Shown here in pieces: positions 1,648-7,688 of a DNA stretch of 7,925 bases. This DNA comes from Selaginella moellendorffii (taxonomy: Eukaryota; Plantae; Lycopodiophyta): the NCBI RefSeq assembly GCF_000143415.4, contig NW_003314646.1, positions 1 through 7,925 on the forward strand. Reading direction: 5' to 3'. The translations under genes were made by a program, and so were the position numbers. The notes below the pieces were generated by a model. It saw only the letters and a program-made list of their open reading frames with translations. It was not told the DNA's origin and did no database searches. How positions within the stretch are numbered: the first letter of the stretch is position 1; each line of letters starts with the position of its first letter.

Positions 1648-2076
1648 TGAAGCTCGAAAGGAAAACCCCAAGCCCCAACACTACTAGTCTAGAATCCAAG
1701 GATCTTTCCACTTGGAAAGTAGCACACACTGCTTTGCCAAAAGGTAGGATGGTTTGCATTGAATGGATGTGAGTATATAAACACAAGGAAGGGTTGCGAC
1801 CCTTGAGTTGAGGATCAGTGATGTGTCCAAAAGAGGCATCCCTTGGAACCTTGTGTCAACAAAGTAAGGGATGTGACTTATGGATCACTGAGGTGGCGGA
1901 GACTCAGTGACCCTTGGTGGAGATTGATGAAGTGTCGAAGGGGTGCCACCTAAGGATGGTCTAAACCCAAGGTTTAGCCCTAACCCAAGGATTAGTACTA
2001 ACCTTAAGCCCAAACTCACCACTTAGGCTCAACCTTAGCCCAAGCTAAGTATTTAGGCCATTTTTGGGGTGCGACA
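1648..2076 (-). repeat. 3' LTR (429 bp)
   Basis: Direct repeat of 7264-7683 (TGAAGCTCG...GGTGCGACA on +). By eye it differs only by A1832/G7439 and a 9-bp segment near 1797-1805. Adjacent to the PPT. Confidence 0.97.
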
Positions 2077-2400
2077 TCACCCCCCCTCCAATAGTGCTAC
2101 ATCCCGGAGCACTCTCCTCCTCACTCCCTTGAGATGGATAAAATGTCTCCGGCGGGTAGTACTTCCGTAGGCGAGACCCGTTCACGCGAGTAGAAAGAGA
2201 AGTTCCTTCCATATCCTTGAGTTGCACCGAGCCGTTTGGAAACACAGCTTCCACTCGATATGGTCCAATCCAGCGAACTCGAAGTTTGCCAGGTCGCTTC
2301 CAATACTTACTCTCGTAGAGAAGTACTAGGTCACCCTCGTTGAAGAGCTTGAGACGAAGGAATCGGTCATACCATGCCTTCCTTCTTTTCTGGATAGCTT
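2045..2400 (-). pseudogene. Integrase C-terminal remnant (GPY/F module); HHCC and DDE core missing
   Basis: AIQKRRKAWYD..FNEGDLVLLY..PGKLRVRWIGPYRVEAVFPNGSVQL..VNGSRLRKYY is a typical gypsy integrase tail. The stop codon (2047-2045) lies inside the 3' LTR. Confidence 0.9.
2080..2089 (-). other. Polypurine tract (GGAGGGGGGG)
   Basis: Purine run on the minus strand, 3 nt upstream of the TG start of the 3' LTR. Confidence 0.9.
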
Positions 2401-4302
2401 CCCGTTCTTCTTTGGCACCACCACAATGGGAGAGACCCACTCGCTCCCCTCCACCTCCTCAATGAAGCCGGCAGCTTGAAGTTTGTCGATGTCCTCCTTC
2501 ACTACCTTTGCATAGCGCGGGTTGAGGCGGTAGGCTCGCTGGCGACGAGGAATAGCACCGTCAACCAGGCAAATTCGATGTTGAGCGATTTCGGAATCCA
2601 CGCCTTTCAGCTCGTCGTAGCTCCACGCAAAGATGTCGCGGAACTCGAGGAAGAGCTGATGGAAGAGTTCTCTGGCATCTGGTGAAAGCTGAGCTCCCAC
2701 CTGCAGTTCCCTCCTCTCAGAATTTCCATTGAACTCAACGAGAAGGGGAACACAGAGTGGGGAAGTGAGGAAATCAGGTTCAGAAGGAGAGGAGTTCACC
2801 TCTATCCCAGCTGGAACCTCTCTGATCTTCAACTCGGCTTCACGACTGTGGAAAAAACGAGCTGGAAAGTTGTCGAGTTCAGGGTCGTACTCCACCGACT
2901 GGAGTCTTGAAACCTCCACAGCGTTGCACTCCACAACGAGAGGCACATCCTCCACCAGGTCCTCAACTTTCTGGAGCAACTCCTGACCGAGAAACAGATG
3001 TTCCTCGGCTTCCTCCAGCTTGTCCAGTTGCAGCACCAGGAACCGGGTGGTGACCAGAAACTCTCCCACGATCAGAGCAACTGTAGGGATAAATCCACGA
3101 ACCTGGTGGTAAACTCCAGGAAGTATCTCCAACATCAGGCCTGGAAAGCCGAACTCCTGCACATCATACTCCTCGGCCACCGCAGCAGTCATGAAGCAGG
3201 TCTGCACCTCATGTAAAACCTGAGCTCGGAGGGTCCCCACATCCACCAAGCGAACGTCCACCACTTGAGCCGAAGGCAATGTGATCACTTGGAGCATGTA
3301 GCAAGGGGGATCAAGCTCTCCTCTTCGAAAAAGGTACAGCCTGCCCCGCTGTCCGAATTCATCTGTTGTGACCACAGTCTCGTGCAAGTAGTTCATCTCA
3401 GCATTAGTAGTCCTCAGCCAATCTGATCCAAGGACAACAGCAATGTCTCCTGGTCGCTTAATCACCAACAGGTTCACGATGAAGCGTTGGTTGCCGAGGA
3501 AGAGAAAAACATCCTCCACCTTGCCGTAAATGGGAAAAACGTCCCCATCAGCACATACGGCCACTTGGTCCTGCTCAGTGATGGTGATCCGCAGCCGAGC
3601 TGCTACAGCAAAGTCAATGGTGATGAAGCTCTGCAGCGCTCCAGGATCCACCAACGTCAAACAATCGAGGCCCTTCACATACCCCATGGTAAACAGTGAA
3701 GCATCCAGCGCAGGATCTCCCCGAACGTTAGGAGGAAAAGGAAGTATCTCCGCTTGGATCATAAGGAAAGGAACCTGGGAAGAAGCTCCCAGCCGCTGAA
3801 GAAGATCTTGACTGCTCACCGTTGAGTGGTGATCGGATATGACCAGCTGCAGCTCTTCATCAGCTCCATTCTCAGAAACGTTCTCCTCAGCCACGAGCTG
3901 CTGGAGCTCCACACCGGGCATCTCCTCTTCCGACACCTCCTCTTGAAACACATCCTCCTCAGTGGATTCAGATGTAGTATCGGAGTCTCCATCTTCTGGT
4001 TCCACAGCTACTGGTTTTTCCCGCTTATATCCCGGCCTGACATGCACTTGGATTGGAATTCGGAAGTTCCCATCCCCGATGGTCAGCACCCCCGTTCCCC
4101 AGTTATGCTCAGCTGATGCTTGAAGCAGCCAGGGCCGGCCCAGCAACAACGGGTAGTTGAGACCTGCTCCCTCCTTCATTTTGAGGACCACGAAATCAAT
4201 GAAGAAGTTTACTCCTGCGATCCAGGTTTTCACACCCGAAACAAGTCCCACGGGCTGAACTCTCCGTTGATCGGCCATCCGGACAGCAAAATGAACTGGC
4301 AC
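2395..4302 (-). pseudogene. pol: pol fragment: C-half of protease 1, acidic linker, protease-like domains 2 and 3, N-terminal start of reverse transcriptase (truncated)
   Basis: MADQRRVQPVG..FVVL..LLLGRPWL (PR1 C-half); LVDPGALQSFIT..ADG..YGKV..VVLGSDWL (PR2); VRGFIPTV..FLV..LFLGQELL (PR3-like); FAWSYDELKG..HRI..YRLNP..IDKLQAAGFIEEV..WVSPIVVVPKKNGKL (RT start). Homology ends abruptly before the expected R.CVD.R motif and there is no YxDD. Confidence 0.92.
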
Positions 4303-5996
4303 AGGCGTGGAAGCTCAAACCTTCTCCACGTTTCCAGCGGCATGATGTTTACACCGCTTCCTCCATCGAGCGTGCAACCACGTATGAGTTCCCCCTGAAT
4401 CTCCACATCCACGCAAGGAGAACTCATATCCGCTATGACAGGCCAGGCAGAGTTCACCACCGCCTCTTTGTGTGCCTGCATGGCTGTGGAAATAGCCTTC
4501 CTCAAACCCGGTGCCAAAGCTAGAAGCTGAGCAAAACTGATACTCGGCTTCTGATTCTTTAAATCAGCGAGAACGTCGTACGGTGGGGGCTGCAAGTTCG
4601 GCACACGCTTGTATCTGCGCCCCTTCTTCCTTGATAGCCCGGCCTCGGGATCTCTCACGCCTTCCTCAGCACTTGCCTTGCCACACTCCATCCTTCGCTC
4701 ACCAGTCGCTTGCTGCAGATGCCCTGTTTGTGAGCCGATGGCACTCTTTAGCGCCGTTCCACCAAGTGCCGTGGCGCTTCCTTCCAGGGCCTTGGCGGAT
4801 GAACCCGCATCCGCTGCCGCCTTTACCTCCGCGCCCCTTCGCTGCTCGGCCACCACATCCCTAATTCCAAAATTAGGGTTCCTGAGTAATTCTGAATTCT
4901 TCGCGTGTGCTGGCGGCGTTGATTCGAATGCACGGTGCAGCGCTGGTTTGTTCTCCATTCCCACTTCCTGCTCCTTGAGGCGCCTCCGGAACCTGCGTAC
5001 AATCGCCTCTGGATCATCCACGTACTCCCCTGGAGCACAAGATTGAACGCCTCCTGCATTCTGCTGCTGCTGCACTACTTGTGAGCGTGTGGCCACGTTC
5101 AGGCAAGGGCGATCGGCTTCCATCTCCCCAGCTCCAAGGTGAATTCCTCCCGATTGCTCCATACTTTGTTTTCCCCTTAATTCAAAATTCGATTTTTGAA
5201 AATTAGGGCTCCCGCCAATCTGGGCATTCCCTGTGATGGTTGTAACTCGGCTGCTATCCCCTCGTCGAAGCTGGTGCTGATTCTTTTGCTGCTGCAGCTG
5301 CCTGTATTCCTCCTCTGGTTCAACATCAGTGTAGACATCTGCTGCATATCTTCCCTCAGCTGTTTGTTGTGCGTTGAACACGCTTGGCTGCAGCATTTGC
5401 CCAGTGGGATCAATTGCATAAGCTTGGGCATTTGCTGTGTAGTGCTCATTCCAGCTGATCGGCTGAACGAAAACAGCCTGAGAGTCAACCACGTTCTTGG
5501 CTCTGGTTTTCTGAAGCTTGTGAGGGCAGTTTGCTTGCTCGTGAAGCCCCTGAGTTTGGCAAATGCCACAAATTGGTTGATAACCAATTTGCTTTCGCGG
5601 ATGCGGGCAATTTGGAGAAATATGGCCCACTTCTCCACAGTTGTAGCATGTCACAGGACCTCTCCTTGGTGGTGCTCGACCCCTTCCTCCTCCTGTAACC
5701 CCCGCAGCATAAACTGGGACCATCTCACCCGTATAAACTGGAGCATAAGTAACCGGTGGAGAGTACGGTTGAGGAAGCATGTGGAGTTGTTGCTGCTGAG
5801 GCATTCCTCCTGGTGTAGCATGGATGTAAGCTGCTTGAACCTGATTCCCCGGCTTATAGTGGCAATCTTCTGATCTATGATTCGCTCGCTTGCAATGCTT
5901 GCAACGAGGTATAGCATCTTGCGGGCATTCGTTGGGATAATGCCCGTAACTTCGGCAACGAACACACCAAATGTTGTCCCTGGTCTTCTGCTGTCG
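4303..5996 (-). pseudogene. gag-pol middle part: four zinc knuckles, spacer, N-half of aspartic protease 1 (LDGGSGVNIM)
   Basis: In frame with gag after a single TGA. Knuckles at 5966-5925, 5903-5862, 5648-5607 and 5570-5526. Pre-protease motif PYDVLADL..ISFAQLLALAP. Catalytic Asp codon at 4367-4365. Confidence 0.9.
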
Positions 5997-7145
5997 TCAT
6001 GGGCTTTGGACTCCCTTAATCCAATTGAGCTGGAGGTCCGACATCTTCTGAGTAAGGGTTTCCACCAAACTTTCTTGTGCTTTCTTCACTTCGGCTTGTA
6101 CTTCAGCTTTCACATCCGGAACCGGTGATTGTTGATAAATGCCATAAGGCATTTGCTGCTGCATCATGGGAGAAGGAACTTGACCAGGTACTGTTGAGTA
6201 TGCCATCTTCGTATAGTCCATAGTTCCCATTCCCGCAGGTGCAACTCCTCCGTGGAGTCCACTTGTTGAATACATGGCTGGATTCGTTGTAGCCATGTTG
6301 GCCATAGGATTGGCCGATGAACTCCCCGAGCTCATCATTTGACGATTCACTCCAAGATGGGCTTGTTCCCAATTCCCAGCAAAAGCTATTGCGGTATTCA
6401 AGTCCGCTGGGCTTTGGCACTTCACGTGAATCTTCAAAGGGAGGGGAAGACCTCCCACAAAGTATCTCACTTGCTCTTCTGCCGTAGGTTGTGGAGTTCT
6501 CTTGAGCAAGAGACCTTTGAATCGCAAGGTATAACTTTGTAAGCTCTCTCCGGGCAACATTTGGAAATCATAGAGGCTATCCATGATCCATTGATTGAAT
6601 CCAACAGGTCGAAACGCTGTTAGGAACGCTGCTCGCAACGCTACCCAATCAGCTCCTGCCGGAATAGTGGTCATCCACTCCGCCGCCACTCCAAGAAGGG
6701 TAGCAGGAAATAGCTTCCTCCTTTCCACGGCTCCAGCTTCATCATTTGCTGTAGTGGTGTTCTCAAATGCCATCACGTGAGCGTCTGGATCTCCAACTCC
6801 CGTGAAGGTAGAGTATTTCATCTTTGTTGTCGCGGTTGCCATTGCTTGTGGTGGTTGTTGTTGTTGTTGCTGACCTTGTCCTTGTGCTTGTGGTGGTGAT
6901 GGTGGTGGTGTAGGAGGTGATATCACAACCTCCTCTTGCTCTTCTTCTTCTTCTTCTTGTTCTTCTCTAGATGATCCAACCGGAGATGTCTCTCGGCTTG
7001 GTCTTGGGCTTGTCTCCGGAGTGGGTGTAGGGCCTTGTCTCCTACGATACCTCTCCTCCCGGAATAACCTTTGTGCTTCTCTTCTCTCGGCTTCTTGTTG
7101 TCTCTCCTCAAGCAATTTCTGGTACTCGTACTGCGAACGGCGCAT
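5997..7145 (-). CDS. gag: Gag capsid-like protein (retrotransposon gag domain), ending at an in-frame TGA
   Basis: First ATG at 7145. The segment FTGVGDPDAHVMAFE..LFPATLLGVAAEW..WVALRAAFLTAF..QMLPGESLQSYTLRF..YFVGGL is a typical retrotransposon gag core with an MHR-like stretch. The N-terminus is low-complexity. Confidence 0.92.
   Translation of the reverse strand: MRRSQYEYQKLLEERQQEAERREAQRLFREERYRRRQGPTPTPETSPRPSRETSPVGSSREEQEEEEEEQEEVVISPPTPPPSPPQAQGQGQQQQQQPPQAMATATTKMKYSTFTGVGDPDAHVMAFENTTTANDEAGAVERRKLFPATLLGVAAEWMTTIPAGADWVALRAAFLTAFRPVGFNQWIMDSLYDFQMLPGESLQSYTLRFKGLLLKRTPQPTAEEQVRYFVGGLPLPLKIHVKCQSPADLNTAIAFAGNWEQAHLGVNRQMMSSGSSSANPMANMATTNPAMYSTSGLHGGVAPAGMGTMDYTKMAYSTVPGQVPSPMMQQQMPYGIYQQSPVPDVKAEVQAEVKKAQESLVETLTQKMSDLQLNWIKGVQSP
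6845..6968. repeat. Trinucleotide runs (TTG, TGG, TTC) encoding poly-Q, poly-P and poly-E in the Gag N-terminus
   Basis: Visible directly; translates as EEQEEEEEEQEE..PPTPPPSPP..QQQQQQ. Confidence 0.85.
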
Positions 7146-7241
7146 ACACACCCCTCCTTTAGTGAAGTCGCCGAGCTGTGTTCGGCTACCGAGCTGTCTT
7201 CGGATTCTTCACTCCATCGGCAGAGCAGCAATGTGCATACT

Positions 7242-7259
7242 TTCCCGGGCAGTGCACCA
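7242..7259 (-). other. Primer-binding site TGGTGCACTGCCCGGGAA, tRNA-Gly-like
   Basis: Starts with TGG, 4 nt inside the 5' LTR boundary. It matches 15/18 to the complement of the plant tRNA-Gly(GCC) 3' end as I recall it (TTCCCGGCTGGTGCACCA). The tRNA assignment is not verified. Confidence 0.8.
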
Positions 7260-7263
7260 GAAA

Positions 7264-7683
7264 TGAAGCTCGAAAGGAAAACCCCAAGCCCCAACACTAC
7301 TAGTCTAGAATCCAAGGATCTTTCCACTTGGAAAGTAGCACACACTGCTTTGCCAAAAGGTAGGATGGTTTGCATTGAATGGATGTGAGTATATAAACAC
7401 AAGGAAGGGTTGAGTTGAGGATCAGTGATGTGTCCAAAGGAGGCATCCCTTGGAACCTTGTGTCAACAAAGTAAGGGATGTGACTTATGGATCACTGAGG
7501 TGGCGGAGACTCAGTGACCCTTGGTGGAGATTGATGAAGTGTCGAAGGGGTGCCACCTAAGGATGGTCTAAACCCAAGGTTTAGCCCTAACCCAAGGATT
7601 AGTACTAACCTTAAGCCCAAACTCACCACTTAGGCTCAACCTTAGCCCAAGCTAAGTATTTAGGCCATTTTTGGGGTGCGACA
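7264..7683 (-). repeat. 5' LTR (420 bp)
   Basis: Direct repeat of 1648-2076, adjacent to the PBS, reading TGTCG...CTTCA on the minus strand. Confidence 0.97.
7390..7397 (-). promoter_or_regulatory. Candidate LTR TATA box (TTTATATA on the minus strand)
   Basis: The only TATA-like motif in the LTR, about 125 bp from the U5 end. Function is inferred from position. Confidence 0.45.
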
Positions 7684-7688
7684 CACCT
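7684..7688. repeat. Target-site duplication CACCT (right copy)
   Basis: Follows the LTR end ...GCGACA at 7683 and is identical to 1643-1647. Confidence 0.95.

Follow-up and report, generated by a model that had tools for sequence, protein, structure and literature searches.

Three tandem retropepsin-like domains in a Ty3/gypsy retrotransposon polyprotein of Selaginella moellendorffii

In a Ty3/gypsy long terminal repeat (LTR) retrotransposon of the lycophyte Selaginella moellendorffii, three stretches resembling retropepsins, here called PR1, PR2 and PR3, follow one another in the polyprotein. The element occupies 1648–7683 on the minus strand of a 7,925-nt stretch of DNA (positions 1–7,925 of contig NW_003314646.1, assembly GCF_000143415.4), referred to below as the window. 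Taken together, our analyses make it likely that the three stretches are real domains in a conserved architecture, and that the copy in the window is a defective derivative. The initial annotation, made from the sequence alone, had described three such domains, and they were recovered at the places it had given, all in minus-strand orientation: PR1 at 4412–4057, PR2 at 3702–3349 and PR3 at about 3303–2959, support for the last being weaker.

Retropepsin-like domains of the polyprotein

That PR1 and PR2 are retropepsin domains is certain. Against a custom profile of 29 retropepsin domains from an exhaustive phmmer search, with 2000 shuffles as the control, PR1 scored 45.5 bits (top shuffle, 6.0), and the Asp of its D-G-G-S motif (4367–4365) fell on the catalytic Asp of the profile; a break in the PR1 frame, described below, was read as X in this and the other domain analyses. 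PR1 also carries the motif L-L-L-G-R-P-W-L and shares 57–65% identity with PR1 of P0002, a protein of a related family in which this domain is uninterrupted; the intact domain matches Pfam gag-asp_proteas at 5e-4, under the Pfam cut-off. PR2, with the motifs D-P-G-A (Asp 3648–3646) and V-V-L-G-S-D-W-L, reached 108 bits and exceeded the Pfam cut-offs for both Asp_protease_2 (7.7e-6, 27.0 bits; cut-off 24.3) and RVP_2 (3.3e-5, 24.1 bits; cut-off 20.3). Its AlphaFold2 (AF2) model, with a predicted local distance difference test score (pLDDT) above 90, superimposes on the RVP domain of Ddi1 with Z 16.0 (root-mean-square deviation 2.2 over 118 residues) and on retroviral proteases with Z 8.3–10.8, equine infectious anaemia virus (EIAV) protease giving Z 10.8. 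No fourth domain emerged from a six-frame profile scan.

Neither domain has the canonical D-[ST]-G: PR1 reads D-G-G-S, and in the D-P-G-A of PR2 the Thr/Ser is replaced by Pro while the Asp is kept. Both motifs are unchanged in the related family, and D-P-G and D-G-G variants are also seen, in the alignment, in the unrelated retroelement proteases P0016 and P0007.

PR3 is probably a decayed retropepsin domain. Its supported core (2959–3198) scored 15.0 bits over profile positions 36–112, which begin past the active-site loop and reach as far as the I-L-G motif, where PR3 reads L-F-L-G-Q-E-L-L; the best of 2000 shuffles reached 8.2. With hhalign against the 29-sequence alignment, PR3 by itself gave 62.7% (E 7e-5); together with the degenerate domain of P0002 (S_PRa) it gave 96.5% (E 1e-9). 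Among its protein-language-model neighbours, the ten best with an assigned family were all retropepsins, at a weak score (0.84). The separate profile comparisons that the initial annotation had proposed for the two extra domains divided, PR2 standing above the Pfam cut-offs and PR3 having no Pfam match beside its hhalign result. The structural comparison divided likewise: PR2 folds, with the Ddi1 match given above, but PR3 does not without a guiding alignment.

The catalytic position of PR3 depends on the alignment. In the profile and in the pairwise alignment with P0002 no Asp is present and the loop is lost, in line with what had been read from the sequence by eye, but a 33-sequence MAFFT alignment places L-V-D-V-G-T (Asp 3243–3241), followed by a 9-residue insert, at the D-x-G position. 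It is thus possible that PR3 lacks a catalytic Asp.

The phmmer search with residues 190–460 matched the PR2 part only, and its top match, P0001 (29 stretches), and P0018 were discarded as Calx-beta/Ig-repeat false positives. Word-based protein searches gave no match for the PR1 region of the open reading frame (ORF) 5804–4230 or for residues 315–560 of the 658-aa ORF; searched for as an exact match, the 658-aa ORF as a whole had no record. Sequence searches of the PDB found no retropepsin with PR2, although PR2 has the fold, nor with a PR3/PRa profile (PRa being the degenerate domain of P0002); as PR2 fails in such a search, both are uninformative. Four proteins of other plants (P0003, P0005, P0011 and P0020) contain two retropepsin stretches each, those of P0003 being near-identical repeats of one element segment. 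P0003, P0005 and P0011 were rejected as precedents, as they look like gene models drawn across nested or tandem element copies.

A diverged family and sibling copies

Among 1.84 billion representatives, the protein closest to the window element was P0002, an 'uncharacterized protein' of S. moellendorffii. Besides PR1, its identity to the window amounts to 75% in the zinc knuckles, 33% in PR2 and 52% in the N-terminus of reverse transcriptase (RT). P0002 is encoded at locus L001 by an element of 8 kb whose LTRs are 96–99% identical and in which one frame of 1601 codons (9689–14491) runs through nucleocapsid (NC), PR1, a degenerate domain (PRa), a D-P-G-A domain (PRb), RT, RNase H and the start of integrase; gag and a zinc knuckle come before the protease-like domains. 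The order of protease, RT, RNase H and integrase is present in L001. Its three protease-like domains have profile scores of 41.8 bits (PR1), 14.9 (degenerate domain) and 84 (D-P-G-A domain), and its degenerate domain, which has a sub-threshold match to Pfam gag-asp_proteas (6e-3), covers the same stretch of the profile as PR3 (35/36 to 112/117).

This family, strongly diverged in these domains, encodes PR1, the acidic linker, a degenerate domain and the D-P-G-A domain within a single frame; the three-domain layout is, in all likelihood, the architecture of a lineage and not a quirk of the window copy. The two families differ in order: in P0002 the degenerate domain precedes the D-P-G-A domain, in the window it follows it. 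Positional orthology of these two domains between the families was accordingly ruled out, window PR2 matching the third domain of the relative and not the second. PR1 of the window and of P0002 align with a local score of 486 (z 97), PR2 and PRb with 155 (z 32), and V-D-P-G-A-L and A-V-C-A-D-G of PR2 are identical across both families at an overall identity of ~33%. In either order, the D-P-G-A and degenerate domains are adjacent, ~40–60 residues apart.

Run on the 1601-aa frame of L001, Pfam reports one protease domain out of three, that with D-P-G-A, and domain-based annotation would therefore record a normal single-protease element. This may be why the layout went unnoticed, and it means that such architectures can escape transposon libraries.

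Selection was estimated per domain by the Nei–Gojobori method from L001 and L002 (7716–13383), a second member of the P0002 family that has decayed (89% identity to L001, ~ten frameshifting gaps and several stops); with 29–36 changes per domain, the ratios of non-synonymous to synonymous substitution (dN/dS) are indicative only. They were 0.30 for PR1, 0.58 for the acidic linker, 0.22 for the degenerate domain, 1.39 for the linker between it and the D-P-G-A domain, 1.03 for the D-P-G-A domain, 0.53 for the spacer ahead of RT and 0.20 for RT. Synonymous changes exceeded the 25% neutral expectation in PR1 (p ~0.003) and the degenerate domain (p ~0.002), and showed no excess in the D-P-G-A domain. 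Within the window family, PR2 differs among siblings by 4 synonymous and 1 non-synonymous changes, too few to judge. Part of L002 carries an NCBI gene annotation (P0032, LOC112348815), amid GRAS and ABC1 genes.

Collecting family copies for such estimates had been suggested by the initial annotation, and the outcome was mixed: the degenerate domain appears constrained, but the D-P-G-A domain does not. Its view that the extra domains are old and maintained nonetheless gains from the second three-domain family (33–65% identical), from the low dN/dS of PR1 and the degenerate domain, and from siblings free of frameshifts, and it is probably correct for the architecture as a whole.

The siblings were found as Logan contigs from four public runs, aligned to window positions 2100–7250. 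They are at least 99% identical to the window and differ from one another, and so represent more than one copy. In the window, PR1 is split, its N-terminal half lying in ORF 5804–4230 and its C-terminal half in ORF 4302–2326, owing to a 1-base length difference at 4308/4309; the single PR1 frame assumed by the initial annotation therefore does not exist in this copy. Three sibling contigs have one extra base at 4308/4309 and the whole of PR1 in one frame. As the related family also has PR1 in one frame, a programmed frameshift at the break was ruled out. A second difference concerns the TGA that ends gag (5999–5997), which is a sense codon in the siblings. Finally, the siblings exit the window at 2396 and continue as the RT motif R-V-C-V-D-Y-R-K-L-N, as does P0002; the RT core, RNase H and most of integrase are missing from the window copy. 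Between 2396 and 6639 no further indel separates siblings and window, and PR1-PR2-PR3 is free of frameshifts in the siblings, one of which has a stop in PR3.

Because the siblings lack the frameshift, the gag stop and the deletion, the window copy is a young, non-autonomous deletion derivative with three private defects, and the family, judging from these contigs, has full-length members with an unbroken gag-NC-PR1-PR2-PR3-RT frame. The broken, internally deleted state of the copy had been missed in the initial annotation. The deletion at 2395/2396 coexists with near-identical LTRs and an intact target-site duplication; it may already have been present in an RNA mobilised in trans, or have arisen after insertion. 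As for the gag end, gag and the next ORF share a frame, with the in-frame TGA preceding the zinc knuckles, and L001 also has a single in-frame stop (9686–9688), a few codons from the equivalent position. Stop-codon readthrough and two independent defects are both possible.

Origin, possible function and rival explanations

With respect to the origin of the extra domains, internal duplication is favoured, because both the D-P-G-A and the degenerate domain of the relative match the PR1s. Among 33 retropepsin domains, the D-P-G-A domain of the relative has both PR1s as its next-best matches after its window counterpart, PR1 reciprocates, and the direct comparison with PR1 gives a BLAST E of 3e-7; the best match of the relative's degenerate domain is PR1 as well. 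A tree of PR1, PR2 and PR3, which the initial annotation had recommended for telling duplication from capture, did not settle the matter at depth, but it did group PR1 with P0020, a plant protease of the D-L-G-A, G-R-x-F-L type (support 89/90), apart from PR2/PRb. A chimeric origin would be compatible with this tree as well.

Proteases of the retroviral type work only as homodimers, and the requirement that two polyproteins meet is believed to set the timing of particle maturation. In the lineage described here, PR1 is most likely the processing protease and would dimerise between two polyproteins as retropepsins do; it is proposed as the enzyme because it comes directly after the nucleocapsid in domain order, is by far the best conserved of the three, and has the same Asp and G-R-P-W-L in both families. 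Later internal duplication would have produced PR2 and the degenerate domain. Tentatively, these two might pack together within one chain as a retropepsin-like pair in which at most one Asp is well placed, a proposal made because the D-P-G-A and degenerate domains are always adjacent and because the termini of both subunits of a retropepsin dimer lie together. The pair could, as an equally tentative extension, be non-catalytic or weakly catalytic and serve protease activation as an internal partner or a brake, or act as a structural spacer. A prediction of the PR2+PR3 complex without alignments scored 0.00 and is evidence neither for nor against packing; an AF2 run on PR2+PR3 used an alignment spanning PR2 only and is uninformative for PR3. 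The initial annotation had itself raised an intramolecular PR2+PR3 pseudo-dimer, or inactive regulators of polyprotein processing; the results speak neither for nor against these ideas, and the one indirect argument is the constant adjacency of the two domains.

It seems doubtful that an active LTR-retrotransposon lineage harbors a natural single-chain retropepsin pseudo-dimer, whether of PR2 on the degenerate domain or of PR1 on PR2 across the acidic linker. If it did, the pseudo-dimer would be a living analogue of the proposed duplication-fusion step from retropepsin-like monomers to two-lobed pepsins, and protease activation could be controlled inside one polyprotein chain rather than via Gag-Pol dimerisation. 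More generally, three protease-derived domains in one chain, none showing D-[ST]-G and two of them invariably side by side, raise the question of how processing is controlled and whether non-canonical D-G-G and D-P-G active-site loops work.

The reading of three real domains in a conserved architecture, with the window copy a defective derivative, is likely, yet a number of observations weigh against it. The canonical D-[ST]-G occurs in none of the three domains, so that cutting by any of them is putative. For PR3, Pfam gives no match and AF2 without a guiding alignment leaves the chain unfolded (pLDDT <55, low-confidence helices). When supplied with a retropepsin alignment, AF2 does fold residues 41–120 (pLDDT 76–91) into a model resembling Ddi1 and HIV protease, Ddi1 being the best structural match (template modelling score ~0.5–0.6); this result is circular, because the alignment was itself made of retropepsins. 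Orthology of PR3 and PRa is not significant (BLAST E 4.3, z 4.0), and as PRa precedes and PR3 follows the D-P-G-A domain, they may be independent decays rather than one domain that moved. The tree of 34 domains does not resolve its deep nodes, and the PR3 and PRa branches are very long. The dN/dS values come from a single copy pair, one member of which is decayed; the D-P-G-A domain of the relative has 7 synonymous and 23 non-synonymous changes, so that constraint is not shown there, and PR3 among the siblings has 2 synonymous and 3 non-synonymous ones, including the stop in one copy.

Some of these points could be taken to mean that only two proteases are real and that PR3 is an unrelated spacer before RT, similar by chance or composition. 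The lack of a Pfam match, the low-confidence helices of the unguided model, a non-significant BLASTP comparison of PR2 with PR3, and the lack of any PR3 homologue both among the 1.84 billion representatives and in the results of the word-based search would all fit. We nevertheless regard this as improbable, given the 15.0 bits of PR3 against at most 8.2 in 2000 shuffles, its hhalign results alone and paired, its ten best family-bearing language-model neighbours, and the coincidence of its profile positions with those of the relative's degenerate domain, which was found independently. Somewhat unlikely is that PR2 and PR3 are neutral baggage, generated by duplication or recombination during reverse transcription and tolerated as a functionless spacer beside one working protease. 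The strong degeneration of PR3 and its stop in one sibling, the dN/dS of ~1 in the relative's D-P-G-A domain and the differing domain order are what such baggage might look like, but all three domains are open in two families only ~33% identical in PR2, the relative's degenerate domain has a dN/dS as low as RT, and V-D-P-G-A-L and A-V-C-A-D-G have stayed identical despite the low identity. An origin as a chimera, in which template switching between co-packaged RNAs joined gag, nucleocapsid and PR1 of one gypsy lineage to the PR2 (alone or with PR3) and RT of a second, is unlikely in our estimate; PR1 and PR2 would then not be mutual duplicates. It draws on the grouping of PR1 with P0020 away from PR2/PRb, on the rank of PR1 for window PR2 (only 30th of 33) and on Pfam recognising PR2 and hardly PR1. 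Set against it are the reciprocated matches between the relative's D-P-G-A domain and both PR1s (BLAST E 3e-7); moreover, the tree is weak at depth, and its comparison set was picked by PR2 similarity.

The element and its relation to known systems

The element is flanked by a target-site duplication, CACCT, with identical 5-base copies at 1643–1647 and 7684–7688. By mutual alignment, its 3′ LTR spans 1648–2076 and its 5′ LTR 7264–7683, both on the minus strand and with TG..CA ends; they are near-identical, differing by one 9-base indel and one substitution, the extra 9 bases lying at ~1794–1802 in the 3′ LTR. A primer-binding site (TGGTGCACTGCC..) is found just internal to the 5′ LTR on the minus strand, from ~7259 downward, and a polypurine tract (GGAGGGGGGG) immediately ahead of the 3′ LTR. 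With these four features, the window contains one complete Ty3/gypsy LTR retrotransposon by structure.

On the minus strand, gag (capsid; 5997–7151, Retrotrans_gag 9e-6) ends in the in-frame TGA and is followed by the nucleocapsid region with CCHC zinc knuckles (5601–5996, zf-CCHC 5.7e-7), two more knuckles standing right behind the gag stop. A long spacer separates the nucleocapsid from PR1 (4057–4412). Translation of 3703–4056 gives an acidic, serine-rich linker and spacer between PR1 and PR2 (3349–3702), and an acidic linker occurs at the corresponding place in P0002. PR3 (2959–3303) is followed by ~110 residues of the N-terminal part of RT (2396–2715; 52% identical to P0002 residues 831–987, BLASTP 6e-46), the internal deletion junction (2395–2396) where sibling contigs diverge, and an SH3-like C-terminal remnant of integrase (2048–2395, within ORF 2440–2045; weak SH3_Tf2-1 match) without chromodomain. 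Of pol beyond the proteases, the window thus keeps just the RT N-terminus and the integrase C-terminus. The element itself is an ordinary Ty3/gypsy one, from a non-chromodomain family of Selaginella.

The paper on the REXdb database describes 'Selgy' as a non-chromovirus Ty3/gypsy lineage specific to S. moellendorffii, and speaks of one PROT domain per element with no mention of multiple proteases (PMC6317226). By its host, its lack of a chromodomain and its compactness, the window element probably belongs to this lineage: like Selgy elements, it is short, with a polyprotein filling nearly all of the internal region, but it carries three protease-like domains rather than one. The literature searched yielded no account of LTR retrotransposons with more than one protease, which is not proof of absence; the suggestion in the initial annotation that the architecture is undescribed therefore remains plausible.

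Each of the three domains, PR3 probably included, is an ordinary derivative of the clan-AA retropepsins; the element is distinguished by how many of them it has, by its conserved acidic linker and by its non-canonical loops. With the retropepsins of other Ty3/gypsy elements (Metaviridae) it shares the fold and profile of PR2, the profile of PR1, a motif of the I-L-G-x-D-W-L type and the position between nucleocapsid and RT. It differs from them in having three domains per chain, in the motifs D-G-G, D-P-G and D-V-G (or none) in place of D-[ST]-G, and in an acidic linker of roughly 70–130 residues behind PR1. Ddi1, whose RVP domain is the best structural match of PR2 and of the alignment-guided, circular PR3 model, is a cellular protein with a single RVP that acts as a homodimer, has the motif D-[ST]-G-A, and is accompanied by ubiquitin-like and UBA domains, whereas the domains described here lie within a retrotransposon polyprotein. 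Pepsins (family A1) and the engineered single-chain covalent-dimer HIV-1 protease (PDB 3ka2), of which 3ka2 and several pepsins were among the structural matches of PR2, share with the adjacent pair the idea of two retropepsin-type lobes in one chain. In those enzymes, both catalytic Asp residues are present and the packing is proven, whereas the adjacent pair here has at most one well-placed Asp and its packing is putative. It has long been proposed that the two lobes of pepsins derive from a retropepsin-like unit that was duplicated and fused, and the lineage offers a natural system in which to study this idea.

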